Below, in pieces: positions 3,223-35,402 of a stretch of DNA of 64,000 nt. This stretch comes from Chlorokybus atmophyticus. Its lineage: Eukaryota > Plantae > Mesostigma and Chlorokybus algae. The stretch is from contig RHPI01002368.1 of NCBI GenBank assembly GCA_009103225.1, positions 773,397 through 837,396 on the forward strand, in the 5' to 3' direction. The notes below the pieces were generated by a model that worked only from the letters and a program-made list of their open reading frames with translations, did no database searches and was not told the DNA's origin. Position numbers and translations under genes: made by a program. Within the stretch, counting starts at the first letter, position 1, and the number at the start of each line of letters is the position of its first letter.

Positions 3223-6200
3223 TCACGACGACATGCCAGCAGCCTGCTGCTCCCTTGCCAATATGCGATGGTATCTCCTGCGTGTTCGGACAACCAGCCA
3301 GACTGCGCAGATGGTAGAAGTTGCACACGCGGCGGATACAATCAAAAAGGTGTCGCCGAAGCACTGGGGCCCAACACATGTATGTTCTGTATCACCACCA
3401 GCGTTTGGGCTCAGGGAATGAGTTGCTCCAAATGATGCTGCGATGTGTTGTTGAGGGAAAACCAGGAGCATCAATGTCACCACTGCCTTGGGCAAATGCA
3501 GCGAGTAAATGTACCCTGCCAGCATGCTTGAGAACAGTATTGACCCCACTCCTGCTGATAACCTGCACGCATGGAGATGATGAGGCATGGGAAACAGAGT
3601 GAAGGCAATGTCACTTGGAAATGTACATGAACACCATCAGGCTTACATGACAGCGGAGGAGATTGCACCAAAGTATGTAAGGCCAAAGAGTTCAGATGCA
3701 GTAGGTGCTAGCAAGCCCCAGTGTGCACCAAACGCAAAACCCACGCCCACCACACCAGGATAAAGGATAGCCACACCTGTAAAATTCACATACGACGTTG
3801 CCATGTCTGTGGGTGTGTGCAGATGGTATAGAAGAAATACCAGGCACGCACGCACGCACCTCCAAAGGAAAGGAAAAGGTGGGCGCATGACATCATAATG
3901 GCGGAGATTGCAAGGAAGGCGGGGCGAGGCGTACCGCGCGACTTGACAAAATGCTCCGACACATTACCGGCGACAATGCGGCCAAGGCAGTTGGCAACGG
4001 AGAAAGAAGCCACCAGAGGCGCAGGCCGATTGCCTCCCGCAGCAACCAGTATCTGTACACAACGCACACATGCTTAGACTTGCTGCACAGTTGCGATAAA
4101 TGGCAAGACTAAGGCTCAGCAAGGGCACACAAATACATGCGCACACAAGCGCGCATGAACACGCACGCGCACACACACACATGTAGCAGCTTGCCTGGCC
4201 GAGGTTGTTGACCACCATCAAGCCCGCACCAGCGCCGCATAGCACAATGTAAGATAGCATCCTGCCAAGGGCGTCACAATTGTGTAAACCGCAACACATG
4301 TAGTACCGCACGTGCATGCCACTTGACTGTCTGAAAGTGCTACGGTTGTGTTGCCAGCTTACCAAAAGTTCGCTTTGCGCACGGCAACAAGCAGCGTGTA
4401 GTCGCCCTTGTCCTTGCTCGCGTTGGAGCTAGATGGAGTTGAGGCTTGCTGCAAGCACAGATGGAGCAGCACCAGAGAGATTAGGGCACGATACCACATA
4501 ACACAAGCACACGTACTATCCAGCACACAACAAACCTGCAAGGGGCCAGGCGATGTTATCAGTACAGATGAGATGGAGGAAGGAGGCAGTAGGGGCGATT
4601 GAAGGCCGGCCTCAAGTGTTTTACTGTTTGTTGTCCCCGCGCTTAATGGCAACGCTGCCCGTACAAACATGTCGCCAGAACCCGATGCAACAAAGATGGG
4701 CAGCATCAGCATGACGACGAGGCCTAGCAGAATGACGTCGTACGCCTCCTCCGGGATAGGCAACATCTCCTGTATAGTACATGCAATCAGAATCGCACAA
4801 CAAGCAAACAAAAACACTAGCAAGAATGCGCGCAGGAACATGCACACCCACACCTACGCATGCACACAGGCAGGAGTGCACACGCGCTCATACGCGCACG
4901 CACACCTCAACAATGCTTGGGATGACGCAAATACCTGGACAAGGATGGCGCAGAAGATGTAGACTGCGAGGGCAAGGACGATGGTGTTGGCGAGGCGGAG
5001 TCGGTGTTTGGTGCCCTCCTCCTCGTCATCTAGCAACAACCTCCGGACATCATCACCACCCGACTCCTCCTCTCCCTCTTCATCATCATCCTGGTCATCG
5101 TCATCCTCGCGCGCGCCACGAACCTTCTCCGGGACAAGGTTGACGAACGGGACCAGCAACGACACAACCGCTAAGGGCACCAAGCCCAAAAACAGTATGA
5201 AGCTGTTCACGTCGGGTGCAAACAGCGCCCTGTAGCACTGCGCAGCATGACACAACAAGTCCACAATCAGATCTCACATGAGACTAACCATTGCAAACCT
5301 GTACTGTACCTGCGTGAACACGGCTGAGCCCAGGCCGAGCATCGCCTTGAGCACGCCGACCACCACGCCTCTGTGTCGGGGGAAGTTCTTCAGACACGTG
5401 GAGAGTGCGGCGCAGTCAAGCCAACCGGCTCCGTTGGCGGCGACAGCGAAGGCTATGGCCAGAGCGGAAGGAGAGAGCACTGCCCTCGATGTCATCGCCA
5501 ACCAGACCTGTTGGAAGGGTTACCTCTATGAGTGCATGTGTGTGTGTACGTGTGCGCGTGCTCATGCATGTATGTGAATGTGCAATTGCGTTTGTCATCA
5601 ACCATATATTCATTGCTTGACTACGCAGCTCATCAGGTTGTTGTGTTATGGACACCAAGTAGTGGTGTTGTAGCATAATGCCACAACACCACACATAGCA
5701 ATCAATGATATAAGCGTTACGCGACGTGTGTATGCATCTATGGCCCATACTGCATTGTTAAGGAGACAACACGATATCCAACCACTCCAGATTTCTTCCA
5801 AGCTCCACCCACTTACCACAAAGTAGCCAGAACACGTTGTGAACATCCCCACAGCAAGCGTCCAACGCGGTCCGTAGGCATCGAAGAAAAGGCCGGTGAT
5901 GATACCAACGAAACCTCCAACATCTTTCGCTGTCCCGATGCTGCTTATCTGCGTGGTGACCGTCTTGTGTGTGGCGCGTCATGCTTGTACCAAAGGTGCG
6001 GCTGGGCACAACGAGGCAAACACGAAGGCGCACGCAATGCTCAACAGCGCGTGTTGCAGAAGTGTGTGGGTGTGCGCACGTGCGCGCGCGTGTGCGTGTG
6101 CGCGCGCACATGCACGCACGCAATGTTCGGTACAAATGTTTATAATTTTTATAACATTGTATACTCTTAAGTGTACACAACCCCTGTCTACCTGGTCCTG

Positions 6201-16280: not shown

Positions 16281-17198
16281 AATTGATCTGGTTTGACAAA
16301 CTCAGACGTCGGCAAACTAGCTGTGTCGATCCCGGTCGCCCTCCCGCCCAGCGGTCAGGCCTTTGCTCATGGGCGGCGGTGGCGGCATAAGCAAGCAGCT
16401 GGCGTGCTTGCACTCTGCTGTTGGTCATGGTGTTCAAGTCCACAACAGCACTGCACCTAAGTTAAGCTGTGTTTGTTGTGTCTAAGCATTGTGAGCTGAA
16501 GCAACAACTCGCTTGCATGTGCCCTCCAGGCTAGTAGCTTCCGCCCCATTTGAGACGCAATTTTCGCGCGTTTTGCTGCTTTCTTCTTGCACATTGTTGA
16601 TTACGAGCATTGTGGAGCCAAGACATATAAAAGCCATTGGCTGCGTGTTTCACGCCAGCAACAAAGAGACATGACAGCTAATTGGGCAGCTGAGCCACCT
16701 GGCTGAAAGAGCAGGAGCGCAGTGGCTTGGGCCAGGCCAGTAAGGTTCAGGCCAGGCTGGTATGGATGAAGCTTCTCCTCATATCAGCGGAAGCCAGGTA
16801 ACATGACATGCTCAGTGAATTGCTTGCATGCTTGACGGTGGCTGAGGCTGTCGAGTCAACAGCGCCAAGTTCAGGCTTGCCGTAACTCAAAGTTTTCAAC
16901 GCACTGTAGCTCATGTCACGCTTCAAGTCCAGTCCTAAGTAGTACTGACGAGGGCACATGTTTAGTGTGCTTAACAGTTGAGTGTCTGCGTGAAGGTCTG
17001 ATAGCAGCAAGCAGTGTGATGTATGTACTCTGTGGCATGCACAAGCAATGCAGTGAACTCTCTCGTAAGTAAAGGGTAGGCAGTAGGCGGCATGAGTCAT
17101 GTACTTTTAAGCACAATCATGATTCTCCAAACGCACTGTTGTGATTGTGGTTGTGGTAGTGGTAGCTCATAGCTCTGTTTGTGACCAAGGCTTTGCAG

Positions 17199-19661
17199 GT
17201 GCGCTTTGGCGACACCCTGGTCCTTGGCGTTGATGGCGCAAATGGTTGGTGTGTTGGCACTGACGACGGCTCCTTGGTTCTGGAGCTCCTGGACCCTTCC
17301 GTACAGGGGTTACCGCATGTGTCGCACAGCATCTTCACAGTACGTGAGCTTTTGCTTGAAGTTTGCATGTTAGCTACTTGCAGGGAAACAGCTGCATTGT
17401 CTACCATGCCACTGCTTGTGCTTGAGTGTGTGCATGCGCTTGTGCGGGGGTGTGCGCGTGTGTGTACATGTGCTCTTATGTGCACTTGTGCACGCGCATG
17501 TGCATGAGTGCGCGTGTGTAGGTACGCTTACGTCCGCTTTGCAGGTGCACACGCGATGCCAGTATGCTGCAATGCTGGCCTTGCACGAGCAGACAAGCTT
17601 TTACAACCAGCACAGTCACAGCGCTTCTGCACGGCTTGATGAGGTGTATGTGCTGTTGCATTGTTGTTGGGTGTTGATGCTATTGTCATGTATGGTCGCA
17701 AGCAAACAACTTGACCATTCACTGGCTTGCATTCATCATGGTGTGTTGCTTACTCACTTGCGGGCGTGACACAGCCCGCGCAGCAGTTCTCCGTGGCTAA
17801 GGAGCAGGCTCGGCTACAAGAACTGCAGTACAACAAAGGTACAACAATGCACTATAGTGCAAAGAGTACTGCTTGTGCGCCATGACTCATTGCTGTTTGT
17901 GCGTGTGTCTCACGGCCACAACAACATGTCACCGAATGTGCTTGTACCGTGCACAACATGTGTGTGCGTGATGACGCATGTAACCAAATGTGTTGCACTG
18001 TGCATATACGGTGCATTGGGTGTGTGTGCAAGACACCTCAGGCAGACCATGAGGCATGCATTGCACATGCCACTCAACTGTCATTATAAGCTATCAGTAC
18101 CTGTAGTGTTTATTGTGTTGGGTTTTATGGAATGTACTCTCATCCGTCCATGTTACGTAGAACTCTTTCATCGTAACATTGGTGAGGCGCTTGTGTATGG
18201 AGAAGTCTTACAACTGCAGCACGTCGCCACCGCTTCGTTTGTGACTGCCCGCAAGCAGCGTGCGCTGGTTGAACGCAACAACTTCAGCGTAAGCTTCATT
18301 ATGCCCAACACGTGAGTATCGCATAAGTGTTGTCCCAACACAATACCGTTTGGCTATTGCCATGTACTTGTGTATGGAGCAGGTTGTTCTGGACGCCAAT
18401 GGCGATGAAGGCTCGTGGTTTGTAATTTTGCCAGCCCACAATGTGAAGGTATGCCTGGTTCGTTTCTTCAATTGAGACCAGATTTGTTACATGTGGCTCA
18501 TCTGCACATGCTAAAGGTGCTTATCGTAAAAGTCCTCTTTACTGACAACGGCACTCAATCTAGGGTGTAGGCGACAAAGTGAACTATGGGGATATTGTCA
18601 ATGTTGTCAGTGCAAAGTATACCAACATCGGGTCAGTACAATAACATGCATGATGGTCATCATGTCGTTGTAATCAGTACCTGTAAAGCTGAACACATTG
18701 GTATTTGTATGTTTGTCAAAGGCATAATCTGTAACAGCATAGCAGCATGTATGTCGCTTTTGTGTACTGCTGAGTTCGGTTCCAGGCTTCATGTGTCTCT
18801 GCAACCTGTTGCCATGGAAGCGCATCAGCCACACCCATACATACGTGACGTTCGTGAGGTGAGATGTGCACTTTGCTATTGAGACTCTGTGTTCATTGCA
18901 TCTGGTAGTGCTGATATGAGCCTGCACAACAACAGGTTAATGGAGCAGAGCAGGTCACCCACCTATCATTGACTTTTGCCTCGGAGCATCGCACGTCAGC
19001 ACAACTCAAGTCAATCCTGTTTGGCGGAGATGTTGTAATGTTGTGTCACAAGTAAGTGCAAAGCACATATGTTGGGCGCATATTGGCAAACAGGACTTTG
19101 GTTGGCTTACGCTGTGGTTTGTCGCAGAGCAAGCAACAGCATATTGGTATGCGAAGACAAGGTTGTTCACTTCACCCACCCACCACAGGTGTACAGTGCA
19201 AGGCACACATCCAACTCACAATGGCATTCACTCGCTGCTAAGCCTCTTTCTGCTGTGAACTCTTATGAATGTGCTGTTTGTGTCTCTAGCGAATCTGGTG
19301 TACTTATGTTGGACATCTGTGTCGATGTTACATTTGCTGCAGGAAGGCTGCAGTTCAACTTCACTATGGATTGTTCAGAGCACTGGAGTGGAGGGAAGCA
19401 CGACGGCTGTCAAGCGTGTGCAGGCATGAGCTGTCATCATCACACGCACACACACACATGTGCACGCACGCACAAACACATACACACCGTGGCCTGATGG
19501 CTCACGTATGCATGTCTTTCAGACAGTCTTGTTGTGTGCAGTTGGTGCGCTTCAAGCATTATGCGAGCGAGCTGTACCTGGAGATCACGGCACCCACAGA
19601 CACAGGCAGCACTCAGCAAGATAGGTATGTTGCAATTGGTACTCGTGTGTGGTGGGTGACT

Positions 19662-19705
<44 letters not shown>

Positions 19706-22700
19706 NNNNNNNNNNNNNNNNNNNNNNNNNNNNNNNNNNNNNNNNNNNNNNNNNNNNNNNNNNNNNNNNNNNNNNNNNNNNNNNNNNNNNNNNNNNNNNN
19801 NNNNNNNNNNNNNNNNNNNNNNNNNNNNNNNNNNNNNNNNNNNNNNNNNNNNNNNNNNNNNNNNNNNNNNNNNNNNNNNNNNNNNNNNNNNNNNNNNNNN
19901 NNNNNNNNNNNNNNNNNNNNNNNNNGGGGGGGGGGGGGGGGGGGGGGGGGGGAAGAGGTGTATGTGGGCGTGTGTGTCAAGGCAATACGCAGTACCCACG
20001 GGTATAATTGGTGTTACTGATTGCTGCATGCTTGGCCACCTGAACTCCGAGCAGTAGGTCCAGCCACATGCTAGGAGTACAGGTCACCGAGTTGTATGAC
20101 TCATTGAGCACGCTATGGCGGCTGCACATTTTTGCTGATGACGCTGATGACTGCGTCCCCGTGCCCAGCACAATTTATATGCAGGTGACACCTGATGCCA
20201 CTTGCACAGGTGTGTGTGCAAGTGGCATCGAACGTTGTGTGTGCATGTGCATGAGTGCGTGCATGTGTGAGCCATACGCGCATGCACGTGCACGTGCACA
20301 AATAGGCATTGTAGTCGAGTTCTTTGGCTCTGTCACTTGCGCATGACGGGCTCCATTGTTATTATGCAGTCGTATGAAGCACGCGGTTGGCTGTCGGAGG
20401 AAGTGGCTTTTAGTTCTGTTACACTAACGTCCGATAGGCCTGATCACAGTGGCTCGGACCACAATCTGCGCCAACATGTTTTTGATAGCATATCAAGCGA
20501 CCGCAGCACTGCAACATCTTCAGGTCAATGCACACATGGTCAGATGCTGTATTGCGGCACAGAAGAGTTGTATACCAATGTCAACTTTTTCTGCAGATAC
20601 CCTTCACGGTGTGAGCATTGCACCATATCGCTCAGAGCGCGATGCACTTGAGTTGACAAAGCCCGATGCACAGTACCTGAGTCAGCTGGCAACTGTTCTG
20701 CATGTGTGTAATGTGCTGTGGAGAATTGTGTCTATCTGATGTTGTATGTTTACTTGAGGTGCTCTGCACTGACTGTGTTCGCATGTGGCAGGCACAAAGG
20801 AAGCTTGCAAAGTTTATTCAGGACTTTCACCAATGTGTGAAGCCTTTGACTGCCAGTGATGATGCAGCAGGCATCCTAGAGATAATACAGCAGGTTGTTG
20901 CCCCTGTCACATGCTCATCTGTGTGCACGTGTTGGCGCGTGCATATTTGCGTGTGCGCATACGCTTCATCAAGCGGATGTGCAAAATGTTAGGGACATAA
21001 AGCTTGTCAACCTATGGCATATGTCGCCTTGCAGGATCAAGACGTTTCGGCAGTGCTGCAAGTGCATGCTGATGTTGTGGAGGTGCAGCTGCTGAATATT
21101 GTCCATCTGTTGGATATCCCGGAGCACTTGGTGCAATATGGCAAATACCATGTGCAGGTGTTGTAAGTTATGCAACCTAGAAAACTTTGCTGAGGTGGTT
21201 GGTGAAGGGTATGGTGATGTAGCAAGGTGTACCTCTAATTACACGCTGATGTCTCTATTGTGTGCAGGCGATGATGTACGAGCAAAAGCTTTGTGACACC
21301 ATTCTCACCGTGCTGGTAGTCATCTTTCTGAAGAAATGCTTTCCTGCAGCGTGTGTGGACTCGACCAGCATCGAATTGCAATACACTGCTACCAGGCTGA
21401 GCTCCGTGTGCACCATGTGTCTTCAAGTAAGCGTGCAGTTGAGAGTGTTGCTTGCTCGCAAGTGTGTACGAAGTAGTGCTCGTTGCTGACTCGTGTCACC
21501 CTCAGGTGCTGCGATTGGCTGTGGCGGCATTCCCTCCAGCACAAGCGAAGCTGGCACGGGCTCGACACGTGTTCTTCAAATTGCTTGGTATGCAATTGGT
21601 TGAGAAGCCATAACACTTGTTGTGTAAACTCAACAAAGCCCATGCAAGTAACTCACACGCACATATGTGCACACGCACATATGTGCACGTGCACACAAGT
21701 ACGCCTGTGTGTACGCGCGCGCATACGCACAGCCACACACGGATGCGGGTACACGTACATGTTTTAGGATGCACGCCATGTGAGCACCTTGAACACAAGT
21801 GCCCGTGCACATGCGAGCGTACACAGACACAATGTAGGACGCATGCCTCGTGAGTCATACACATGCAGGTGCACGCGCACACCTCATACACACGCACGCG
21901 CTGTGCAGGCAGTGAGCAATTAGCTGATGTGACGATAGACGTGCTATATGCCACTTTCCACGGTAACTCGGAACTGCTTGGCACCTTACGCATGGAGGAC
22001 TTAGAAACTCTCACAAACGGTTTGAGAGTACATCATCGCCACCGATGCGTGTCCTTGTTGGAGGGACTCTGCAGGTATATATCATGTTGGGTGCCGCGCG
22101 CGTGCGGGCATAGTTGTGTATGTGACAAAACTGTTGATTCACAGCGTGGACGGGGCTCCCGTGCCCAGCATACAGAACATGCTTGTGGACCTGCTGCTGC
22201 GTCCCGGTGTTCTGCTGCAGATCACCGTGCAGGACGATGGGCCACACACGCAGGTAAGAACCGTGTGTGCATGCGTGCGCGTGTGTGTGCGCGTACAGTT
22301 CGTCAATGGTTGGTGCGTGTGTAGACAGTGCGCATAGCTGGCCCAGATGGTCTGCAATACGACTGTCGACAAACCAATATAGAAGATGATAACGCCGTTT
22401 TGGAAGGCTCCTGGGAAGAGAGCCAAAGTGTCAGAAATATTCACGGCAGTGCTGGCGAGAAGTACTGCCGCTATCTCCTCGCCTCCTTACAACTCTTGTG
22501 TGCTCTTTGTGCTGGAAGGTGCGCTTAACCCTCAAGAAAGCCCTCTTGCATGTCATCTAGATTGCATCTGACTGTTTGCGCGTGTGTGCGTGCGTGCGTG
22601 TACTTTTCTCAGGAATGGCAAAGTATGCTCGGTGCTTGTAGCCAACGCAGAAAGTCTGTGCATCAGTGACTATCAGCTGCTTGTTATGGCTTTCATGCCA

Positions 22701-25700
22701 GGACTGCCCATGCTGCTGCGCGCGGCGTGTTGCCGGCTGTTCTGTCGGTTATATGTACAACAAGAGCCGTTTTGCGTGGTATCACCAATAAGCCGCACAA
22801 GGTATTGAGTTAAAGATGTGCGTGTGTGCGCACGCGCATGCGTGTGCATGTGTGATGATCTGAATGGGCACTCATATGTGGCAATTGATCAGAGTTTGGG
22901 GCTTTACGGAGCAGGTGTTGGCAGACAATTCGCTACAGGTGACAAAGCGTTTCTAGCACGTTTTGCTTAGCACATAGGCAAGCACACGCATGCTGCCGTG
23001 CCTATTATGCCTAACCAACACATTGGCGTGTTGTCTGTCAGGCTGTAAACCCACACATTAATAGCTTTAAGAAAGCTGCGACAGAGTTTCTTAAAGACAC
23101 GCAGGGTTGCTTCAGCCTGAACTCTATGAGCCGCAACGTGTTCGTACTTGCAGGTGTTTGCTCCCTGTTTACAATGCATTGCGCACCGAGTGCACGCGTG
23201 TGTGCTTGCGCGTGTATATGTGTGCGCGCGTGTGTACGTGTGTGTGCGTGTGTGCACCTGGGCTTGCATGCGTGTACATGTGCACTTACTTCTTCCTGCT
23301 CTCTACCATATCCACACAGTCCTTGAAGCCTTACAATTGCTCGTCACGTTTGGTCTCTTTGACTCTCCTCACCCACCATCCCCATCCACGCTGTCGCTGA
23401 TATCTCTTCTCATCTCATTACTGAGCGGAGCCAATGACTTGGTGCCCGCTGGACGCTCCATGTTTGAGAAAGCCCCCGACACACTCATCGTCATGAGATG
23501 CAAGACCACAATCTGTGAAGTTCTAATGTACTTCCTGGAGTGCCATGAGAACCAACTGCTGACGGAGGTGTACCAAGCCTTCTGCTCCATGCGGAGTGCG
23601 TGACACACGCACATATGCACACTTGTGTGTATACATGGGTTGTATCTGGAGTTCGACTACTGTGGTGACAAGTGGTCCAGGGTGGCATTGTGCTGTGCTG
23701 ATCCTGCTTGAGGGTGGTCTTATTTGGCACGGTGGTGATTTGGAGAAACATTGAAAGTCACATGTCGCTACGTGGTGTGCTTGTGCTTCACCATCAGCTG
23801 TTGTTGTATAACAGCTGTTTGCCCGCAGACTCAACGAAGCCGCACGCCAGCCTCGGCAAACGCTTCAGCAAATCAGTCTCTGAGCGCTGGAGTGTCCGTC
23901 ACCTCAAGATCTTGCTGGTACAAAGCTCCCTCCACACATGCATTTATAGCTTGCCCAACCCACTTGCGAGTATATACTCATAGCATCCTTGGTATGGTTT
24001 TGTCAGGATGACGCGAGTATTGCTAGACCCGAGACCTTTCCAAAAGAGTCTTTTCGTGCTTTGGAGAAGGAGCTCTTTGCAGAATGCCACTCTGCCACGG
24101 GACAGCAGCAGCTGTTGAGCTCCCACAGACGCTCTCAATTGACCAACATACTCTTGAGTCTCACGCGCTATGAGTACACGCCTTTGCAGGTATGGGTGTT
24201 GTGTCTAGGTTGTGTTTGGGCTCAACTGGAGGTGGGGGGGGGGTTGTAATTAGCATGCCGCGCGCAAACACATATGCACCGACGCATATACGCACCGACG
24301 CACACAATGTGCATTATGCCATACAACATGCCACAAGCGCACGCACGCGCACACAGAAACACACCCACCCTCCCACAGGCCATTTCCTGGCGTTTGGTTG
24401 AGCGTCTCCTCGGTCAGCGTGAAGCCGTGGTCTACGACGTGTTGGGCACTCAGCTGCTGGTGTATCCGGACGTGATACAAGCGCACCGGCAGGCCATACA
24501 GGACCTCAGGCTCCTGCACAACCAGCAGAAGTGGCTAGCGAGCGATGAGGAGCAGAGGGGCCAAGAAGCGCAGATGGCGTGCAAGCAAGTATGCGAGAGG
24601 TAGAGTCAATGCGTGTGGTCGTGTGCACTACTTGTGTTATACGCATCTTCCTACGTATTACACACATACACACATATTTACGTGTTTGTGTATATATGTG
24701 TGTCGCACACATGCACACAATCATGTGTCTGTTTGCGACACACGCATACACACATTGTTTCATGTGTGTATGCACATCAAACAAACGCGGCACACACTAC
24801 GTGTGGGACTCACAGTGTGGTCCACTCGTGTGGCAGATTGTGTGCTTTGCTTGAGTTGGAGAATGGCAGCAGCGCCGGAGATCACAAACATGCGGAAGTT
24901 CAGCCGGTACGCCATTAAAACCAGTGGTTTCTTGCTTCTATTCCATTAGTCAGTACACCCAACGTTATTCAATAAACTTGTCACAGACCATAGAGCATGC
25001 GCCCGCTTTGGAGACTGTCCACCGCAACCAGGCGATGCTGTACAACCTTGACATTGTGCAAGCCATACTTGAGGTTGAGTGCACTTGTTGGCCGACATGT
25101 CATGCACATATGCACGTAATTGTGTAGTCATGGTTGACAATGAATATTTGCAGGTGCTGAAGCTTCCCATCAAGCGCATCAGACCCGACACCAGCCTGGA
25201 CGTGGATGAGACCAGCCCCGGACTGATAACACGCGCCCGTGCCTTGGAAGCTGTTGGTGAACTTGGTTTGCGAGACCTGCTCCAGGCTGCATATACATTC
25301 CTTGGACAGGCAAGCATTACCTATGCCACTACTCTTGGTGTTGAATTCTCAGTGTTCTCAGTGTGCAAGTGACTATTGCATGCATTGTGCAACTGTCATG
25401 TTGGAGCTACGAAGGGTTCTTGAGGTTGCCACACATCAGGCTTGGGAACCGAATCACAAGGAGACGTACACGCATTGCCCATCATGACCAAACAGCGTGA
25501 AAAGCACACATTGACCAACATGTTATCAAATTGTGTTACGTCATCACCAACCTACATTGTGTTATCGTTGTTGTTGCAGTTATGTTGCCCTATCTTGCGC
25601 GCGGACCACCCTTTGCCTTGGCGTTTGCTGCTCGGTTCCAATGTTGCCTCAGAGTACAGCCTTCACGCAGCCTCGCAACACGATGTCGCACACAATGTTG

Positions 25701-28700
25701 GAGCGTATTTTCCTCATCTCATGTTGGACGGCGTGTGCCCAGCCGCAGCACATGCTGTTGCAATGAGCATTATGGGAAACGCTGCGACTTGTGGCGCGTT
25801 GGAACAGGATGTGGTAAGAGTGTGATGTGTGTGGACATACATGTGGGAATGCGTGTTTTTGCCTGTGGGTATGTGCGTATGTCGGTTTATGCGCGTGTGC
25901 GTGTGTATGGGTGGGTATGTTTATGTGTGCACACACATACAAATACGTATACACAACACACACAACACATCATTGTCCATGGTGGGGTGCTTTTGTCGAG
26001 TTTATTGTGTTGGGTGCTCCTTGATGTCTATATAGCGTGCAACACACGCACGTACAACACCTTTTTGTCGGGTTCATTGTGCACTACTTTAGTACATAAC
26101 ATGCTCGGAGGTGGCACTCCAACACGCACTGCGCATGGCCATACACAAAACTCAACACCCTCTTATGTTGGCTTCTTGACACACGCAGGTGCGCCGCATC
26201 TTCCGCTGCGTCCTTCAATACCGCCGCTGCAGTTTGATGAAGATACTCATCGTCGCCGTGTCCACACGCGTGCAAAAGTTGAAAGAGTGGGTGTCCCGCC
26301 TTGCGTCCGATTATCAAGAAGAGGCGTTAAATTTATGTAAGACTCCTGCTGAAGTGGCACGCCGGTTTCGCAAAATGAAAGACAATGAACACGATGTGGC
26401 GGGAGATGTGTCTGAGCTGCGGTATCACACGCTGTCTGTCACCCTCATCGCCTTATGCTGCCAGGTATGATGAGATTGTACATGTATGTCTTACATGTGT
26501 AGTTTTGTGTGAATTGGTATGTGCACACATGCATACGAAATGTATCTGCTGAGCCACGTGAATGCCATTGCGTTGTGTGCAGTATGTCTATGTAAACGTA
26601 AACCAACATAGCATCATGGTGCTGTACGTATACATAACCATGCTGTCACGATCGTTTGATTAGATTTCAGTATGTGTGAGCATTATGGAAGAGTTGACGT
26701 CGTCACTCCAGTCTTACATCTGAAGCTCTTCTTGACACTGTTCACTCTTCATTCCAGGGCTCTCCCAGGCCAGAGACAGTGCATCAGGCATCCGAGTTGG
26801 TGAGTTGGTCCGACTGCATGGCGTCGCTATTGGACCAGCGCGGGGGCACACGGCCATCATCGGAACACAACAGCAATGACAACACCAGCAACCGACCAAC
26901 TAATGCCGCTGCTACGACGCTGAGATTCGTCAAGATGCCTTATATGCTCATCCTGCATTATGTGTATGTACAGGTAAAATCTGGTGATGTTGCTGTTACT
27001 ATCTTGCTTCTGCCAGTCCGGTTGTTTTGTGTGTTCATTGTATTGCTGTGATTATTGAAAGTAATGTTTGTACAATAGGCGGAGTCTTCTAAGGGCAATG
27101 TAGACGTTCGCTCCTCTCACAACAGACTCTGGCCTGGTGTGAATAGGAGTGGCAACAGCCTGATGCAGGTCGAGTGAGGAGTGTGCAGTTGCACAACATG
27201 GCGTGCGTGCGTGCGTGCGTTTGTGCGTGCGTGTGTGTTCATACCGTCTGAAGCTAGTGACATGCAGGACGTGTTGATTGATTTGAAAGATGCAGTAGAT
27301 GAAGCAAACAGTGCAGATTTGACACATTGGCAGCCGCATCATGTTGGTGAAGAGGGTTCGGCCCTGGATTACATCATATGGGCTGTCCTGCCTATGCTCA
27401 CTTGCTACATGCGCAATCACTGCCCACCTGTGAGCACAATGACTGCCGCACAAGTCAGCGCACTACAAGCCGTAAGTCGGTGTGGACAGTATGTGTACGT
27501 GCGCGCACACATGCATGCGTGCTTGTAGTGTTGAGATTGTTTGCACTCCTGTGTGCATCTGGGCATACTTTTGTGTATGAGTGTGCGTGCGCGTCTTTGT
27601 TGATGCGTATGTGCGTGCATGAGGGTGTGAACACTTGCTACTGTGCAGTTGAAGTCCACATGTGAAGACCTTTACACCGCCCTTCCAGCTGGCGTCGAGC
27701 GTTCAGCCGTGGAGGCGTTCCTATCTAGCCTGCAGCAGCAACACATCAACTTAATTGATGCAAATCGCACGTGGCACAGGATACCTTCACAGGCTTTGCA
27801 GCGATTGGACACGCAGCCTCCTGCAGAAGAAGAGCTCATTATGATGGACTGGGCCATGTTCACACGTGCATTCGCTCAAGCGTTGGGTGTGGATGTGTCG
27901 AGTGATGTGGTGGAGGGACGTAGCAGACGCGTGTACAGGAAGTTGCTTGGAGGTGGAGCAGCTGGCCAGCAAGGAGAAGGAGGAGTGGTGCGGCAGCTGG
28001 TGCAGATGATGTGTCAGCCTGGTAGGAGTTGTGCAAGCGTGGTTGCTGATGTGGCAAGAACACACGTATATGCACAAGCGTGCGCAGACACCCGCCCACA
28101 CATGCACACGCACACGCACAAACCCATACACATTCTCATCTCAGGTGCCCTTGAGCACGTACAGCCTCAGCTCCTCCGCGCGGACATTGTCTCTCACCTC
28201 GCCTTCATGTTGGCCACCTCTGCCGACTCTGCTCTGCCCCCAGACTCCGCCATCAGATTACTAAAAGTCCTCATCGGTCTCCTCTTTGTCACCGACGTTG
28301 ATGGTGTAATCTCCACGGATGAGTTTGACAAGAGGTGGGACCTGTGGCAGGCAGGCTTGCACGCCAACATGGCGTATGCAAGCCGAGAGGAGTATGCTGA
28401 AGTACAGGCATGGTATGTGCATATGTGTGCGTGTGCGTGTACACGCGTGCGTGTGTGTGTAGCTGGACGATGCGTCAATGTGCATATGGATATTTCGTGG
28501 TTGTGTTCTTGTGACTGTTGAATTATTGTGTATCAGTATAATTCTACCATACAAGTACAAGGTCAGTCATAATGATTGGAGTAATATGTATCATTAGAAT
28601 GTCATCATGCAGTGACCTAACGCCAAATGCAATGGTCTACTACTATCTGTTGCCGTGTCGTTGGTACCACTATCAATGCGTATTGTTAATGAGTATTGTT

Positions 28701-31700
28701 GTTGCATCAGGTACCACGAGTTGGGTGTGACGAAATGTGCAGCGACGCTTGTATCACATCCGCAACCCAGCATTGCGGCTGGTATGTGGCTATTTATAAT
28801 GAATCCTGTGTACCCATTGCTTTGCTATTGTTGCGTGCTGAACTGACACCAGTGTGCCACAGAGGCTACTGTCTTGCTCATGCTTTTGACGGATAACGGC
28901 ACCGAAGCCATCACAACCGTCGCGCTTGAGGCTTTGTCGTCCAATGCAAAGTTTCTCAACACAGTGAAGAAGATCTTGCAGGTGTGTAGGCGTGTATGTG
29001 TCCGTCATCAACGTGCGTGCGTGTGTATGCACGCGTGTGCGTGTGCATGCGCGCGCACGTGTGTGTGCTGGTGCCCGTGCGCTTGAAGAGTGTTTGTGTG
29101 CATGTGCGTATGTTGATGTGATTGCCTTGGTTGGTTGATAATGTACAAATCTATCAAGTAACTCACGATAGTAACACATCAGGAAGCCAGCACCACCGCG
29201 CGCAAGCAGATCAAGATTCTTCAGCGCATCCGTCAAGAGCGCGTCTTGCAGGCTCTTCAGGTGTCGTTGCCTAAATCCCAATCTCAGAACAGTTTCATGA
29301 ACACAGAGCGTGAAAAGAGCGTGTGGAGCGGCGGCAACAGCAGCCTACGCAGCAGCGGCTTCACGACACTGTTGAGGACAGCGACGGCGCAGTTGAGACG
29401 AAGCTTCGCACGGCGAGCATCGCTTGGGTTCAGAAGACATAGGCACATGACACATGATGAAAGTGAGGTACCTGGTTGCTACATATCATGCCTCTATTCA
29501 TGTATATCTGCACTTCATATTCATGTATGGGTACAGGTATATACGAATGCGTGTGCGTGCATGCGTGCGTTCGCGCACGCACGTGTGATTGCACATACAC
29601 ATGTTACAATATACATACAGAAATGTGTACATGCATGCATACACACGCAAATTTGTAAGTGTACATAGTTATGTCCGTTCGTGTACACGTGGTCACATGG
29701 TTGTGTTCTGTTCCGTGCAGGTGCCCAACGTGCAACACGTGCTACGGATGCTCCAGTCCTTCTACAAGAGGCAGTCCAGTGGAGCACCGCGACTTTTGCT
29801 GACTCCCTCCGGCACGCAGGTATGGTGATACATCAATCTTCAATCTTCACCTCATTCTGCCAAATATGAACGCATTGAAGTGGAAATCCATCAAGTTGTA
29901 TACAACATGAGCCGGACAAAGGAAATTGTTAGTTAGTGCACATTGTGAAGTCTTTAGAGTACAGGGCACTCATTTATCATTTTGGACGTTTAACTGGCAG
30001 GAACTACTGCTGTACCTTGTGCGCTACTTGGAAGCTCTGCAGCCGGGCATAGAAGACTCGATGGGTAAGCTGTCATTTATACATCTCTGTTGCTGTTGAC
30101 ACCTGCCAGCACACACCTACACACAAGTGCGCAGGCTTGTATGCATGCGCGTGATCAGTACATGCCTGTGCCCACACGAGCGCGCACATCTTTGCAACAT
30201 ACGCGATTAATGTGATGATGATGCAGGCCTTGGAGATGGAAATATATCCATTGCAGCTGTTCAGGTGTGCAAGACAATCACTGCTTTGATGTCAGGCCCC
30301 ACACTGGACAATCAGGTACATGAGTTAAGACTGTTCTCAGCAATTAGCTCTTCATCAGCCTGCAACCCAACAACACAACCTTGTACAGGTTTTAGTGGCA
30401 CGCAGCAACTTCCTGCAGCTCTCCCTTTGGATCTTCCGGAACCAACGCTACGAGCCAATGCTTCCTTCTTCAGAGACACACATCCCAACCCAACAACAAA
30501 TCCACTCAACAACAGACCCACATGGCACACACATCGCGCGCGCACAATCACTCAAAGGCGGTCCCGCCGTGAACAACTTTAAGTGCCTCCTTAAACAGGC
30601 CATTTCGGACTCATGGCTCGCTCTGCTGGAGGAACTGCCTTATATCCAGACCGAGATACCAGCCAAGCTGCTGGATATATTAGACTTTGAGCTGGTTTTG
30701 GAGAATGCTCAAGTCATAGTGGATCTGATACATGATGCGAGGAGCTTTCTTGTGCGCTCGGGTTTAGTTGGATCCGATTCAGCAGCAGCCATAACAGGTT
30801 TATTGAATCGGTCCGCATGGCCAGCGATGTATCAGAGCTTCTCTGGACAAGATATCGAGCTCAGGCTGCGAAGGGAAGCGATGTCATGCCTGCTGCTACT
30901 GCAACGGCTCGACGATATAGAGACAGTCCAGAGCCGATATCGAGTCGGGCATGTACGAGTCGTGTTTCTCGCAGGGGTGACAAAGGGTCATGGAACAGTG
31001 CGTGTGCCCGTGCGTGTGCATGCGTGCTATGTGTTCATGTGTGTTGTTCTGTGTGCAGCCTCGTTGCACTCATGCCAGCGGCTGTTTGAAAGTTCAGCGC
31101 AAAGGAACTCTCTGTCTTGCTCATGCACTTGACAAGCATGAGACTTCAAAGGCGTTCTTTGACAAGCACAGAGGGACTGTAGAAGTTCTACATAATGGCC
31201 AGGTGAGAATCATGTAGACCGCAACTGTCTGGGTGATGTTATGTAGGCGGTTATTGTTTGTACATACTCTGTGTGAGACGTGTGCAGCATTACAAAGAGC
31301 ATACTGTTGTTGGACAAAGTCAATAGCTGATTGTGTTTTGCTATCATTGCGTACTGGGTAAGTACTTAAATTTTCCAAGTAACAGAGTCAAAAGTTTTGT
31401 GCATATGATACTGCTTCTTTGGGTTCTACGTGTAACCTTCTGCAAACTACGTCAGTTGTGTGTTGATGCAACTTTCACAAAATGGCTAGCATGTATCTGT
31501 GTGGTCATTGCATGCGCGTGCGCACATCATAACCATCTGACCCCTGCTCTCATTTACAGGTCCAGCTTGTTCGTTTCCAGTTGCCTGATGACTTGCATCG
31601 TGCGCACAACTCCCGCGGCATTCATACTATCCTCAAGTCCTTGCAAAAGCACCGTTCAGTCCAAACGCCCAGCCAGCACGCCACACTTCTCATGCAGCAG

Positions 31701-34494
31701 TTGAGACTGGAGGTGTTTAGAAACAACCACAAGGCGAGGTTGAGGGCGGCGGGGGTGGTACTGCCGGTCGTGCAGAATAATATGGCGGTAAGGGAGGGGA
31801 GGGATATGTGCGCGCGCAGGCATACATGTGCACATATGCGTACATGTGCGTGCGTGTGCGTGTGTGCGCACGTACACACACATGCATACATATGCGCATG
31901 CACAGCACAAACTAGATGCAAATGCAGTGTTAGTAAAACATGGCAGTACATAGGTCTGCAAATTTGTAATTCTTCGTGTGTTGCTAACCATCATGTCACG
32001 ACTGTGTTTGTACAGTACATCCTCGCTGTCCCCTTCTTCATCTCCTTGTGTCTGCTATTGGTGCTCACGCTTTGGTACGGTGACGGTTTCAACAACTGGC
32101 GCAACACCGGAGCGCCCTACATCGTGTTTCATGTGTTTGCTTGGCTACAGGTGCAGTTCATGTGTTGTGTGGGAGAGTGTGGCTGGGGGCGAGGGGANNN
32201 NNNNNNNNNNNNNNNNNNNNNNNNNNNNNNNNNNNNNNNNNNNNNNNNNNNNNNNNNNNNNNNNNNNNNNNNNNNNNNNNNNNNNNNNNNNNNNNNNNNN
32301 NNCGCATATGCGTATGTGATATTGTTGTTATGCATTAGGTGTTGGCCACATGGACCACACTTGTGTTGTACACCTTGGCGGAAGGTCCAGTGTTTGTGTA
32401 TGAGCATGAAGGCCGCCATACCCGCCCTGATGAAATGTAAGCATAGTAATGTACTTCATGCCACAATCCGTGATGTTGGTTACATAGCACGACAACCGAA
32501 GACTAATCAGCAATGCTAGTAATGTCAAATGTTGTCTGTTGCGTGCAGTGAGCAGCGCAGTGTTAAGAAGAAGGCGCAACAGCAAGAACAGCCGCATGAA
32601 GCCGAGCAGACGGATCTTGTCGGCGTGTTGAGGCACCTGGATCGCCCTTTTGACTTTGTGTTCAGGCTGGTTCGCAGATGGTTTAGAGGTGAGAGAGCTG
32701 TGTGCGTGTGCGTGTTGTTATGTGTATGTGCGTGTTCTGGTTGTTGGCGTTGTTTGCCTGGTGGCACTAATTGCCTATGCAGGCTTATCGGAGTACATCA
32801 GGCAAGAACTCCTTGCCGTTAGGTGGCCTTTGTTGTTGTACTCACCACAGGTATGTGCACAGGCACGCTTGCACGCACGCACGCACGCATGCCACTAGAT
32901 ACATGTGTGCATTTTATAGTAGCAAGAAATTGTTACCATTGTGCCTCATGCTTGATGCTTTGCATGTGCTGACAACTTTGTCCCGTAGTTTATCTACTAT
33001 GGCGCTATGTTTATTGCGGCGATTCTCGGCATCTTCTGGGACCCCTTTTTCTTCGCTCTCCACCTGCTCTTTTGGGTCTTCAATCAGCCGCGCGCGTTCG
33101 TTGTGCTGCGCGGACTCCGAGTCGCCGCGAAGGAACTGCTGAAGCTGGGGCTTTTGGGACTCATTGTCATGTATCTCTTTGCGGGTATAACAATTCTAAT
33201 AATAATACTCTTGGCAATTTGGTATGTGGGAGTGTGCGTGCATGTGTGTACATGTGCATTACTGTGTGCGTGTGCGTGTGCGTCAAACTAATAAGTGCTG
33301 CCCCTGCAGTTGCCACATATATGGCGTTCAATCCTCAAGGCGATGGCGACGATGCTTGTGGGTCTGTTTATCAGTGCGTTGGCAAGTATTTTGTTTATGG
33401 TTTCTCCAACCAGCCAATATCTGACATATTTGGTGCGCCGTGGACTTCCGTGCCGATATCGCCATTCAATGAGAATGCCCGCCAACAGCGACGCATCATT
33501 TTCATACTGGCGTTTTACACTATTTATGCCATACTGCTGCTGAACTTCCTCATCGCGCTTATTGTGGACGCCGTCTTAACTGGTAAGTGCACGTGTGTGC
33601 ATGTGCGCGTGTTGTTGGGGGAAGGATGTGCGTGTGCATGTGTGTGTGTATGTGCATGTTTTCACACACTGTTATGGGTATGCATATAATAGTCTGTGCC
33701 TGCCTGCGCGCGCGCGCATGCTTGCGTGTGTGTGCAATTGCGTGTATAATGGAGACCACTTTCAGCAAGTCGAGGTTGTAACTCCAGTGTGCCTCATTTC
33801 AACAGTTCGAGCCTCAAAGGCTGCGCGCCGTGATGACTTGAAGCAACGCTGTTTTGTTTGCCGGCTGCCATGCAAGGTAACTCCCACACTGTGTCAACAC
33901 TATGTCCAGGGAGTTAGACACAGGTGGTCATCGCCATTGGCATGAACGCGCAGGTTTTTGAAGACTTACAGCCAGGCGGTTTTGAAACCCACATAGCGGA
34001 TGAGCACAACCCACTCATGTACCTCTACTACCTGCTGTGAGTGTCCTCATGCATTGCATATGATGTGTATGCATTATGCATATTCAAAATCAGGTATTAT
34101 GTTATGTTGGTGTCATGAGCGATAAAATACGTGCCTGAGGTTTCTCACAGCCACACATATGCACGCACAACCGCACGCGCACACACCTGCACGCACACCG
34201 TATCTCATAATGTTGCTGAACTCTCCCTCTCGTAGTTATGTTGGCAAGAAGGACCCCTCAGAGCGCACAGGTTTGGAGGCGTTTGTGGCGCGGCAGCTGT
34301 CGCAATGCGGGACGGAGTGGTTGCCCGTTGCACGCTCGCACGCGGTGGATGCCCACACACTCGCAACGCGCATTACACGCAACTCAACGCTTGTTGTTGA
34401 TGGTGGTAACGACTTGTCTTCGTTGGCAAGCGCCATCCGAACACTCCAGCAACGCTTCTCACGGCTCGAAGCTGCACTGATACAGAACCCATGA
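17199..34494 (+). CDS. ITPR: Inositol 1,4,5-trisphosphate receptor (ITPR)-family intracellular channel, dozens of exons; true start codon lies upstream of 17199 and was not identified
   Basis: Exons align in order to ITPR domains. Suppressor/MIR: VRFGDTLVL, LVYGEVLQLQHVAT, VVLDANGDEGSWFVILP, GVGDKVNYGD, ILFGGDVVMLCH, SSTSLWIVQ, LVRFKHYASELYL. RIH: CTMCLQVLRL..TFHGNSELL..VSLLEGLC..IQNML. LLRAACCRLFCRLYVQQEP. Second RIH: TFLGQLC..SIMGNAATC. RIH-associated: HVLRMLQ, TALMSGPTLDNQ, LKQAISDSWLALLE. Six TM segments (32.0-33.6 kb). C-terminal zinc finger CFVC..FETHIADEHN and KDPSERTGLEAFVARQLSQCGTEWLP, stop at 34494. No SPRY or RyR repeats were seen, so ITPR-type rather than RyR. Confidence 0.93.
19706..19925. 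other. Assembly gap (N) flanked by poly-G; other gaps at 32198-32302, 45580, 47441-47646 and 53440-53541
   Basis: N runs bordered by G- or C-rich or homopolymer sequence. Confidence 0.99.
25310..25579 (+). other. Probable GC-AG intron in ITPR
   Basis: CAG|gcaagc at 25310 joined to ttgcag|TTA at 25579 gives AAYTFLGQ|LCC. This aligns with ITPR1 AHEFLQNFC. Confidence 0.65.
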
Positions 34495-35402
34495 ACACAA
34501 TACGTGAGCACATTATGTGTGAACATGATATGCAGACAGGTACTGTTGCGCCGATGTGCTGTTGCCATCTACTGTTCCACCAAGTGTGTCATTGAGTACA
34601 CGGCGGTCTGTTCCTGTTTGCATGCGCTTGTGGAGTGTGCAACTGGACGTGTAGAGCTACTTTGCACTAATGCAAACGTTGCATAGCCAATCTTGTTCTT
34701 GATGCTTATAAATTCGGCTTAGCTATTACGCAACAGCAGCTCAACGCTGTGCAGCAGTGATAGAATAGAAGTCATGTAACTGTGAGGAATGCGCAGCAAG
34801 TGCTGGCAACCCAATTTAGAGCTCGCTTACCTTCCGCACAGGTTGTGGTATGTGCACAGAGCCTCAAAGACTAATACTACAACATCAGCGAAAGGCAATC
34901 TGTTTGCGTTTCTTATGTGTATGTGTATGACAGTGCACACAGTGTCAGTGGTGTGTACATAAGTCTCTAAGGGCATGCATGTGCAAAGAGACACCACAAA
35001 ATTGTTCATGCAAACAGGCAGCAAAGCTCCTAGTGCTAACGACCAACAGCATTTAGGCTGTATCATGCAACAGCATGAACTGCAAAATCCTGATATGGAA
35101 TACATGAACGTCTGCGACCCGACAATATGCTACAAAACTTAGCATGAACAGTCTGCCCAACCTACACCCAGATATAAGGCTCAGCAAGTAGCATTACAGA
35201 GTGTCATAATGACAACCACCCAACGTGTCAGTTATAGTTAGTAGCAGAGCCTCTCTACCACTACTAGTGCTACTCCTTCTGCAGGTAGATATGGTACCTG
35301 ACCCTAGACCCGCCCTGGATGAGAGCGTGAAATAACAACAAAAAGAATGACAACACCCAACTCACCTCTCACAAACACCTCGCAGACACACTTTCTCTCC
35401 TC

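Follow-up and report, generated by a model that had tools for sequence, protein, structure and literature searches.

An ITPR/RyR-superfamily gene of the streptophyte alga Chlorokybus atmophyticus with a glycine-free loop at the predicted filter position, within a green-lineage clade that appears to have a remodelled outer pore

In reviews, the green-algal homolog of the IP3 receptor (IP3R) serves as evidence that animal-type Ca2+ release was present in the plant ancestor and was lost toward land plants. The homolog of Chlamydomonas reinhardtii, a putative channel, belongs to the flagellar proteome and is abundant in flagella (PMC8318260). The selectivity filter motif GGGxGD of IP3R and ryanodine receptors (RyR) is conserved in animals and parasites (PMC3194816), oomycetes carry GGGIGD or GGGLG(G/S) (PMC7399828), and the filters of the calcium-release channels of Paramecium span everything from the complete motif to, in the case of group VI, 'practically no similarity' (PMC3213138). 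Paramecium groups III, V and VI hence provide a precedent for ITPR/RyR-like filters that depart from GGG(V/I)GD, but they represent a different lineage and are compared here by description only. Here we analyse an ITPR/RyR-superfamily gene on the forward strand of a stretch of 64,000 nucleotides (nt) from Chlorokybus atmophyticus (contig RHPI01002368.1, positions 773,397 to 837,396; hereafter the window), for which an initial annotation had proposed that the filter is replaced by a glycine-free NQPISD. The conservation of GGG(V/I)GD in animals, on which that proposal was built, is borne out by the literature and extends to many protists. On the pore loop of the Chlamydomonas, Chlorokybus or Mesostigma homologs, or on streptophyte homologs in general, we found nothing in the literature, which is weak evidence of absence.

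Based on transcripts, homolog searches and profile alignments, we propose that the window gene encodes an expressed, intact green-lineage ITPR/RyR channel with an ancestrally remodelled outer pore, operating as a gated cation pore with altered permeation, a reading that we regard as probable, with considerable reserve. In common with animal IP3R and RyR, as known from the cryo-EM structures of IP3R1/3 and RyR1/2, the predicted protein has homologous S4-S5, pore helix, S6 and C-terminal zinc finger regions, a Cys pair before the pore helix, an Asn and an Asp in S6 (the latter aligned with RyR1 D4938, in the window motif IVD), and an Asp at the filter position of RyR1 D4899 (D2551). It differs in that the Gly triplet and the fourth Gly of the filter are gone, the filter is one residue shorter and is followed by an eight-residue insert, the luminal loop from S5 to the pore helix is very short, the Asp of the RVIYD motif is absent, and both Glu of the Ca2+-activation site are replaced. 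The features of the gene are collected in Table 1.

The translation of positions 33340-33575 of the forward strand, in the frame whose codon starts are divisible by 3, reproduces exactly the two peptides quoted in the initial annotation, i.e. the pore loop ...ACGSVYQCVGKYFVYGFSNQPISDIFGAPWTSVP... and S6, RIIFILAFYTIYAILLLNFLIALIVDAV. As claimed there, NQPISD and S6 lie in a single exon, which is supported by transcripts and is bordered by an acceptor ending in ctgcag and a donor beginning with gtaagt. Within this exon, a Cys-x5-Cys pair comes first, then a stretch that resembles a pore helix and closes with YGF, and after it SNQPISD, IFGAPWTSVP and the long hydrophobic S6 helix. Contigs from four public runs were placed on positions 28700-34650. 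Two of these, of 8940 nt (X1) and 3108 nt (X2), stem from two different studies under the same organism label, and both place as spliced pieces with zero letter differences, with GT..AG at all joints (17 of the 17 introns checked in these contigs). In the transcript-supported model the frame is open over at least 994 codons to the stop codon at 34492-34494. Since the contigs are spliced and free of differences, the introns are of GT..AG type and the frame is open, the gene is genuine and transcribed, and its channel half is intact. Assembly gaps, of which one falls inside the gene (an N run at 32198-32302), and the long branch of the protein described below could instead point to an artefact, i.e. 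faulty assembly, contamination or a pseudogene in decay. However, the gap is intronic according to the transcripts, and the zero-difference contigs of two studies, the 17 introns and the 994 open codons rule out assembly error, intron read-through and a pseudogene remnant, leaving a very small probability for an artefact of any kind.

Judged by homology, the gene is a member of the ITPR/RyR superfamily. tblastn with homologs from Mesostigma (P0004) and Closterium (P0016) is colinear from 18166 (query residue ~92-101) to 34479 (query residue ~3619-3881). The initial annotation put the presumed start of the gene farther upstream, at 17199. In Pfam scans of exon-sized pieces, Ins145_P3_rec gave sub-threshold matches at 17770-18312 and 18293-18472 (E 0.002 and 0.0095; profile positions 96-133, then 129-152) and RIH a weak match at 21854-22321 (E 0.001), while the MIR domain was not seen directly and RIH_assoc had no match on these pieces. 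The weak matches are colinear and, combined with the colinearity to domain-bearing homologs, they point to the N-terminal domains of the superfamily. Three small exons further downstream align by local blastp with the RIH_assoc stretch of Mesostigma P0004 and contain a G-P-x-x-x-N-Q motif. Towards the C-terminus, the S4-S5 exon matches IP3R3, ITPR2 and RyR1 at the corresponding positions (phmmer, best E 0.044), and a channel-domain profile of the green clade, in which the window exons form separate rows, detects RyR1 with an E of 1e-36 and ITPR with 5e-35 (HMMER). Along with the profile-profile comparison described below, this is evidence of a six-transmembrane channel domain homologous to S4-S6 of RyR/IP3R. 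The zinc finger is present as CFVC and HIADEH on two exons, in frame and aligned with the homologs, and an AlphaFold2 (AF2) model of the Mesostigma channel domain has RyR/IP3R transmembrane domains as its top structural matches (E 1.8e-8).

When the pore exon (90 residues) was searched on its own with HMMER against 1.84 billion representative proteins, five matches were obtained, all of at most 40 bits and the best of 39 bits, and neither a close relative nor the gene's own product was among the five. Two are from named organisms, Volvox africanus (an 813-residue C-terminal fragment) and Mesostigma viride, the latter with the complete architecture of Ins145_P3_rec, MIR, RIH, RIH_assoc and Ion_trans. 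The AF2 model of the exon had no match in the PDB. Viewed in isolation, the exon could also be ascribed to a TRP-like or other six-transmembrane channel rather than to the ITPR type, as an exon-only PDB search yielded a single match, Chlamydomonas TRP1 (6pw4, E 0.37), exon-only Pfam gave generic Ion_trans alone (E 0.009), and the LLLNxLIA of S6 resembles that of TRP channels. The likeness to TRP1 is however superficial and confined to S6 (LLLNxxIA), and such an origin is ruled out by the transcript joints, which tie the pore exon into one transcript with the ITPR-like S4-S5 exon and those of the zinc finger, by the ITPR architecture of the best relatives among the 1.84 billion proteins, and by the match of the clade profile to RyR. 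We assign it a probability close to nil, and the gene context places the window gene in ITPR/RyR.

The position of the filter follows from two profile methods. HMMER (clade profile against RyR1) and hhalign (clade against canonical profile, probability 98.1) agree in placing YGFSN-QPISD of the window on the canonical xGxRxGGGIGD, with Y-G-F-S-N-(gap)-Q-P-I-S-D-I-F under x-G-L-R-N-G-G-G-I-G-D-V-L. The three canonical Gly then correspond to a gap, Gln and Pro, and the fourth to Ser, while Ile and Asp are retained; the insert of ~8 residues (APWTSVP plus one) after the filter has no canonical counterpart. The replacement described in the initial annotation is hence sustained in its position and in the loss of the glycines, but it is incomplete, with the Ile and Asp of IGD kept in a filter shortened by one residue, and it is not specific to this gene, as GGGxGD was found in 0 of the 12 green-lineage homologs recovered. 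With N-QPISD in the place of GGG(V/I)GD, the gene is not classed here among the canonical IP3R and RyR.

With MAFFT alone, the gap shifts to the opposite side and the canonical GGIGD falls under the W-x-x-V-P stretch of the insert, in agreement with a different register in which the insert around the invariant Trp forms the narrowest part of the pore and NQPISD merely extends the pore helix. The D/E-x-W of Chlamydomonadales and Mesostigma indeed recalls the T-x-E/D-x-W filters of Cav/Nav/CatSper, the clade profile weakly matches the pore domains of Cav2.1 and CatSper2, and the AF2 models have short helical turns, at low confidence, straight after the pore helix. However, HMMER and hhalign favour the other alignment, the Trp is located 12-16 residues past the end of the pore helix, much farther than in Cav/Nav filters, and the acidic residue before it is missing in the window (A-P-W), in Closterium and in two fragments. 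In all tetrameric P-loop channels the filter directly follows the pore helix, and therefore we prefer the register obtained with the profiles, with NQPISD at the filter position, and consider a pore constricted at the Trp to be quite improbable.

The filter departs from the canonical motif throughout the green lineage. Word-based searches, seeded with homolog channel regions and capable of missing relatives, widened the set by Volvox carteri, Astrephomene, Edaphochlamys, another protein from Mesostigma and two from Closterium. They also recovered the Chlamydomonas protein annotated as 'ryanodine-inositol 1,4,5-triphosphate receptor Ca2+ channel', as well as three canonical GGGIGD/GGGLGD proteins, one of them from the fungus Basidiobolus. 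The green-lineage set (n=12) comprises five Chlamydomonadales, two Mesostigma, two Closterium and three metagenome fragments. The loops of the five Chlamydomonadales, TGIMGDIS(N/A/T)LFNSDLWDTVP, are nearly invariant; the Mesostigma loop reads YGLMPEVVIGTV..GWEYVP (core MPEVVIGT), that of Closterium NAIASSSIGGLW..WDTVP (core ASSSIGG), and those of the fragments GIGQGDISV, ALATSSISG and ALASSSIAE, with one fragment glycine-free like the window. All 12 pore regions combine an I-[S/G/A] core with an invariant W-x-x-V-P in the eight-residue insert, and the loops conform to the pattern [GA]-[ILF]-x(3-4)-I-[SGA]-x-[LI]-[FW] followed by the insert (alignment A4), SNQPISD of the window being one variant. 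In the clade alignment C16, Y20, C22 and G24 (exon numbering) are invariant.

Maximum-likelihood analysis of the channel domain unites the window with the other green-lineage rows in a clade with 100/100 support, separate from the canonical GGGIGD/GGGLGD proteins, and the window protein has the longest terminal branch of this clade. The window rows of two alignments (A2 and A5) include 10 intronic residues from 33924-34034, by which the pore columns are unaffected. The closest relatives found are a Mesostigma protein (36% identity over 261 residues, E 2e-49) and a Closterium protein (239 bits over 572 residues), as would fit an origin in a streptophyte alga. With the loop pattern, the W-x-x-V-P insert and the monophyly all present, the window gene appears to belong to a green-lineage ITPR-like subfamily. 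Since the non-GGGxGD loop and W-x-x-V-P are common to all green homologs, the remodelling of the outer pore would predate the window gene and be older than the chlorophyte-streptophyte split, and the near-invariance of the loop in Chlamydomonadales argues for constraint and hence function. The initial annotation had stated that its reading would fall if the motif proved common among characterised functional homologs; non-canonical filters are indeed common, in homologs that are themselves putative channels, so this objection applies by half.

The individual branches nevertheless differ from the window in detail. The Chlamydomonas protein (Cre16.g665450, XP_001701472, P0013) and its Volvox, Astrephomene and Edaphochlamys orthologs have the same superfamily architecture, with ~30% identity to the window over the channel domain, and share with it the absence of GGGxGD, the I-S core, the W-x-x-V-P insert and the zinc finger. 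In their loop, GIMGDIS(N/A/T), the Asp precedes I-S, whereas it follows I-S in the window, and their S6 reads IAS instead of IVD. The proteins of Mesostigma viride (Mv10976/Mv19527; P0004, P0015) and Closterium (P0016, P0017) resemble the window in S6 (IVDAF), in the insert and in the zinc finger; unlike in the window, one or two Gly are kept in each of their loops. Full-length ITPR-family genes are thus seen in at least three streptophyte algal lineages, i.e. the window gene, Mesostigma and the zygnematophyte Closterium. A further green-type homolog of 3327 residues (P0014, eukprot gene25884-11559_t) is represented by a gene model that passes from ...PPCNTFYQ to YEPKKQARS... without pore helix and filter, most likely through an exon missed in annotation and not through a true deletion.

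In S6, two nearly invariant residues differ in the window, W to Y and G to A. The latter is the exchange of the 'hinge' Gly pointed out in the initial annotation (G82 in alignment A4), which every other clade member retains. The exchange itself is confirmed, but little functional weight attaches to it, as the same substitution in RyR2, G4864A, caused no significant functional change (PMC3675601). The other S6 change named there, that of the Asp of RVIYD, is found in the window as well, but is not peculiar to it, as this Asp is absent across the whole green clade. By contrast with these exchanges, the S6 Asn (N78) is invariant, canonical proteins included. In RyR1, four acidic residues are reported to be critical for permeation, D4899 and D4938 among them (PMC5715910), and the Asp residues of the window at these two positions are noted above. 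At the gate, the window, Mesostigma and Closterium all have a Val in S6, at the position that we take to be that of RyR1 I4937.

The Ca2+-activation site, mapped here from the residues that we presume to form it in IP3R3 and RyR1, has lost its Glu pair in the window, with Lys in the C-E-N/G-H-N motif and Ala in the T-E-Y-C-Q-G-P-C motif (local MAFFT; Table 1). Both Glu are kept in Mesostigma, Chlamydomonas and Edaphochlamys, and Closterium and Volvox carteri keep Glu at the single site covered, leaving the window protein as the only one with a loss among the green-lineage and canonical proteins compared. Because this loss coincides with the longest branch, the window protein would be the most derived and fastest-evolving member of the green clade.

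These changes raise the question of whether ions still pass; the initial annotation had suggested a different permeant ion, a low conductance or a scaffold. The protein could be a non-conducting derivative, in which the ITPR scaffold (tetramer and cytosolic domains) is kept for a structural or signalling role, e.g. in flagella or at membrane contacts, in line with the lost glycine run and the Pro in the filter, the loss of both Ca2+-activation Glu in the window alone, its longest terminal branch and the two altered S6 residues. However, the S6 changes are conservative, G to A being without significant effect in RyR2, and the protein retains the pore helix, the Cys pair, W-x-x-V-P, the S6 Asn and Asp, the Val at the gate and the zinc finger. 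A scaffold has no need of a conserved P-loop, and the non-glycine loop is clade-wide and strongly conserved in Chlamydomonadales. We therefore consider a pure scaffold unlikely, and the most likely reading is that the protein continues to act as a gated cation channel whose permeation has changed.

As such a channel, the protein would still assemble into a tetrameric gated cation pore, for which it keeps the pore helix, the Cys pair, a predicted ring of filter Asp, a hydrophobic gate in S6, the Asp on the cytosolic side of S6 and the zinc finger at the C-terminus. The filter would consist in part of side chains (Asn, Gln, Ser and Asp) and of a Pro-stiffened backbone, not of glycine carbonyls, with the Asp ring at the luminal mouth. 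Because it would rest on side chains and a Pro backbone, conductance and divalent/monovalent selectivity are expected to differ from those of the wide glycine-carbonyl filter of animal IP3R/RyR. Gating is probably not activated by Ca2+ in the animal manner, since both Glu of the site are lost.

Several observations weigh against this picture. Elsewhere in the clade the residue that follows I-S is T, G, N, A, V or E in place of Asp, and MAFFT alone, as described, does not reproduce the preferred register. Relaxed constraint could also account for the long branch and for the missing Glu pair of the Ca2+ site. The AF2 monomers have low confidence at the filter, with a predicted local distance difference test (pLDDT) of ~58 at the filter in the exon model (mean 67.5) and of ~53 in the Mesostigma loop. 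The survey is small, covering ~12 sequences from 3-4 green lineages found by searches that may overlook relatives, and that the members of this clade are cation channels is something we infer from their sequences.

The window gene is accordingly a new, strongly derived member of a known green-lineage ITPR/RyR branch, and the apparent clade-wide remodelling of the pore is the more interesting result. Homologs are still present in three or more lineages of streptophyte algae (Chlorokybus, Mesostigma and Closterium). A whole green clade lacks the glycine filter, which mutagenesis showed to matter in animals, and at least one member also lacks the ligands of Ca2+ activation. This raises the question of which ions the green-clade channels conduct and what opens them, and makes available naturally varied filters for relating structure to function in IP3R/RyR permeation. 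As a more speculative extension, which we would sooner doubt than endorse, the green-algal 'IP3 receptors' may be a distinct pore class, with a side-chain filter and an extra Trp-Val-Pro turret conferring selectivity and conductance unlike those of animal Ca2+-release channels (e.g. monovalent-preferring or low-conductance), and with Ca2+ activation given up in this alga. If so, the textbook view of animal-like IP3R Ca2+ release in green algae would be wrong or incomplete.

Table 1 Features of the ITPR/RyR-superfamily gene, in positions of the window
Feature	Position	Strand	Evidence
ITPR/RyR-superfamily gene, homology-supported part	18166..34494	+	tblastn colinearity, weak Pfam matches
Three small exons, RIH_assoc-like region; Lys (29766-29768) and Ala (30283-30285) in place of the Ca2+-site Glu pair	29721..30315	+	local MAFFT, local blastp
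Exon with end of S3, S4, S4-S5 linker and first half of S5	32989..33184	+	transcript joints; phmmer
Pore exon with end of S5, short luminal loop, pore helix, predicted filter, clade-specific insert and S6	33310..33582	+	X1/X2 pieces 33309-33581, 0 differing letters; 29-35% identity to green-lineage pore regions
First Cys of the conserved C-x5-C pair, just upstream of the pore helix	33357-33359	+
Predicted pore helix, approximately VYQCVGKYFVYGF, with the second Cys of C-x5-C	33366..33404	+	helix at residues 19-33 of the AF2 exon model
NQPISD, at the position of the canonical GGG(V/I)GD filter	33408..33425	+	HMMER, hhalign
GAPWTSVP, part of the ~8-residue insert without canonical ITPR/RyR counterpart	33432..33455	+	W44, V47 and P48 are invariant columns; gap in RyR1 and canonical profile
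Predicted S6 inner helix	33492..33575	+	AF2 helix at residues 56-89, pLDDT 81-93; aligns with canonical S6
Ala at the S6 'hinge' Gly position (RyR2 G4864)	33555..33557	+	alignment A4
Exon with post-S6 helix and CxxC half of the zinc finger (CFVC)	33806..33876	+	joint 33581/33805, cut +1; frame continues from the pore exon
Exon with HxxxxH half of the zinc finger (FETHIADEHNPL)	33954..34036	+	83 nt left between 33876 and 34236 by contig coordinates; acceptor cgcgcag
Last coding exon with TGLEAFV...WLPVARS motif, C-terminal helix and stop codon	34236..34494	+	transcript pieces; tblastn to Mesostigma and Closterium

As estimated from the 8940-nt contig, the predicted protein comprises ~2800-2900 residues, compared with 3700-4100 in the Mesostigma and Closterium homologs. 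Short introns (73-357 nt in the 17 that were checked) with many low-complexity runs of TG/CA type (gtgtgcgtgtgc...) characterise positions 17000-34500; on read-through these runs give long stop-free pseudo-open reading frames (pseudo-ORFs), rich in Cys, Val and His, in several frames and thereby mislead lists of open reading frames. A run of 220 N at 19706-19925, with poly-G on its flanks, falls within the span of the gene as well. Beyond the true donor at 33185, the frame of the S4-S5 exon stays open for another 37 bases and there reads the hydrophobic GITILIIILLAIW, which mimics a longer S5, although this segment is intronic according to the transcripts (33185-33309).

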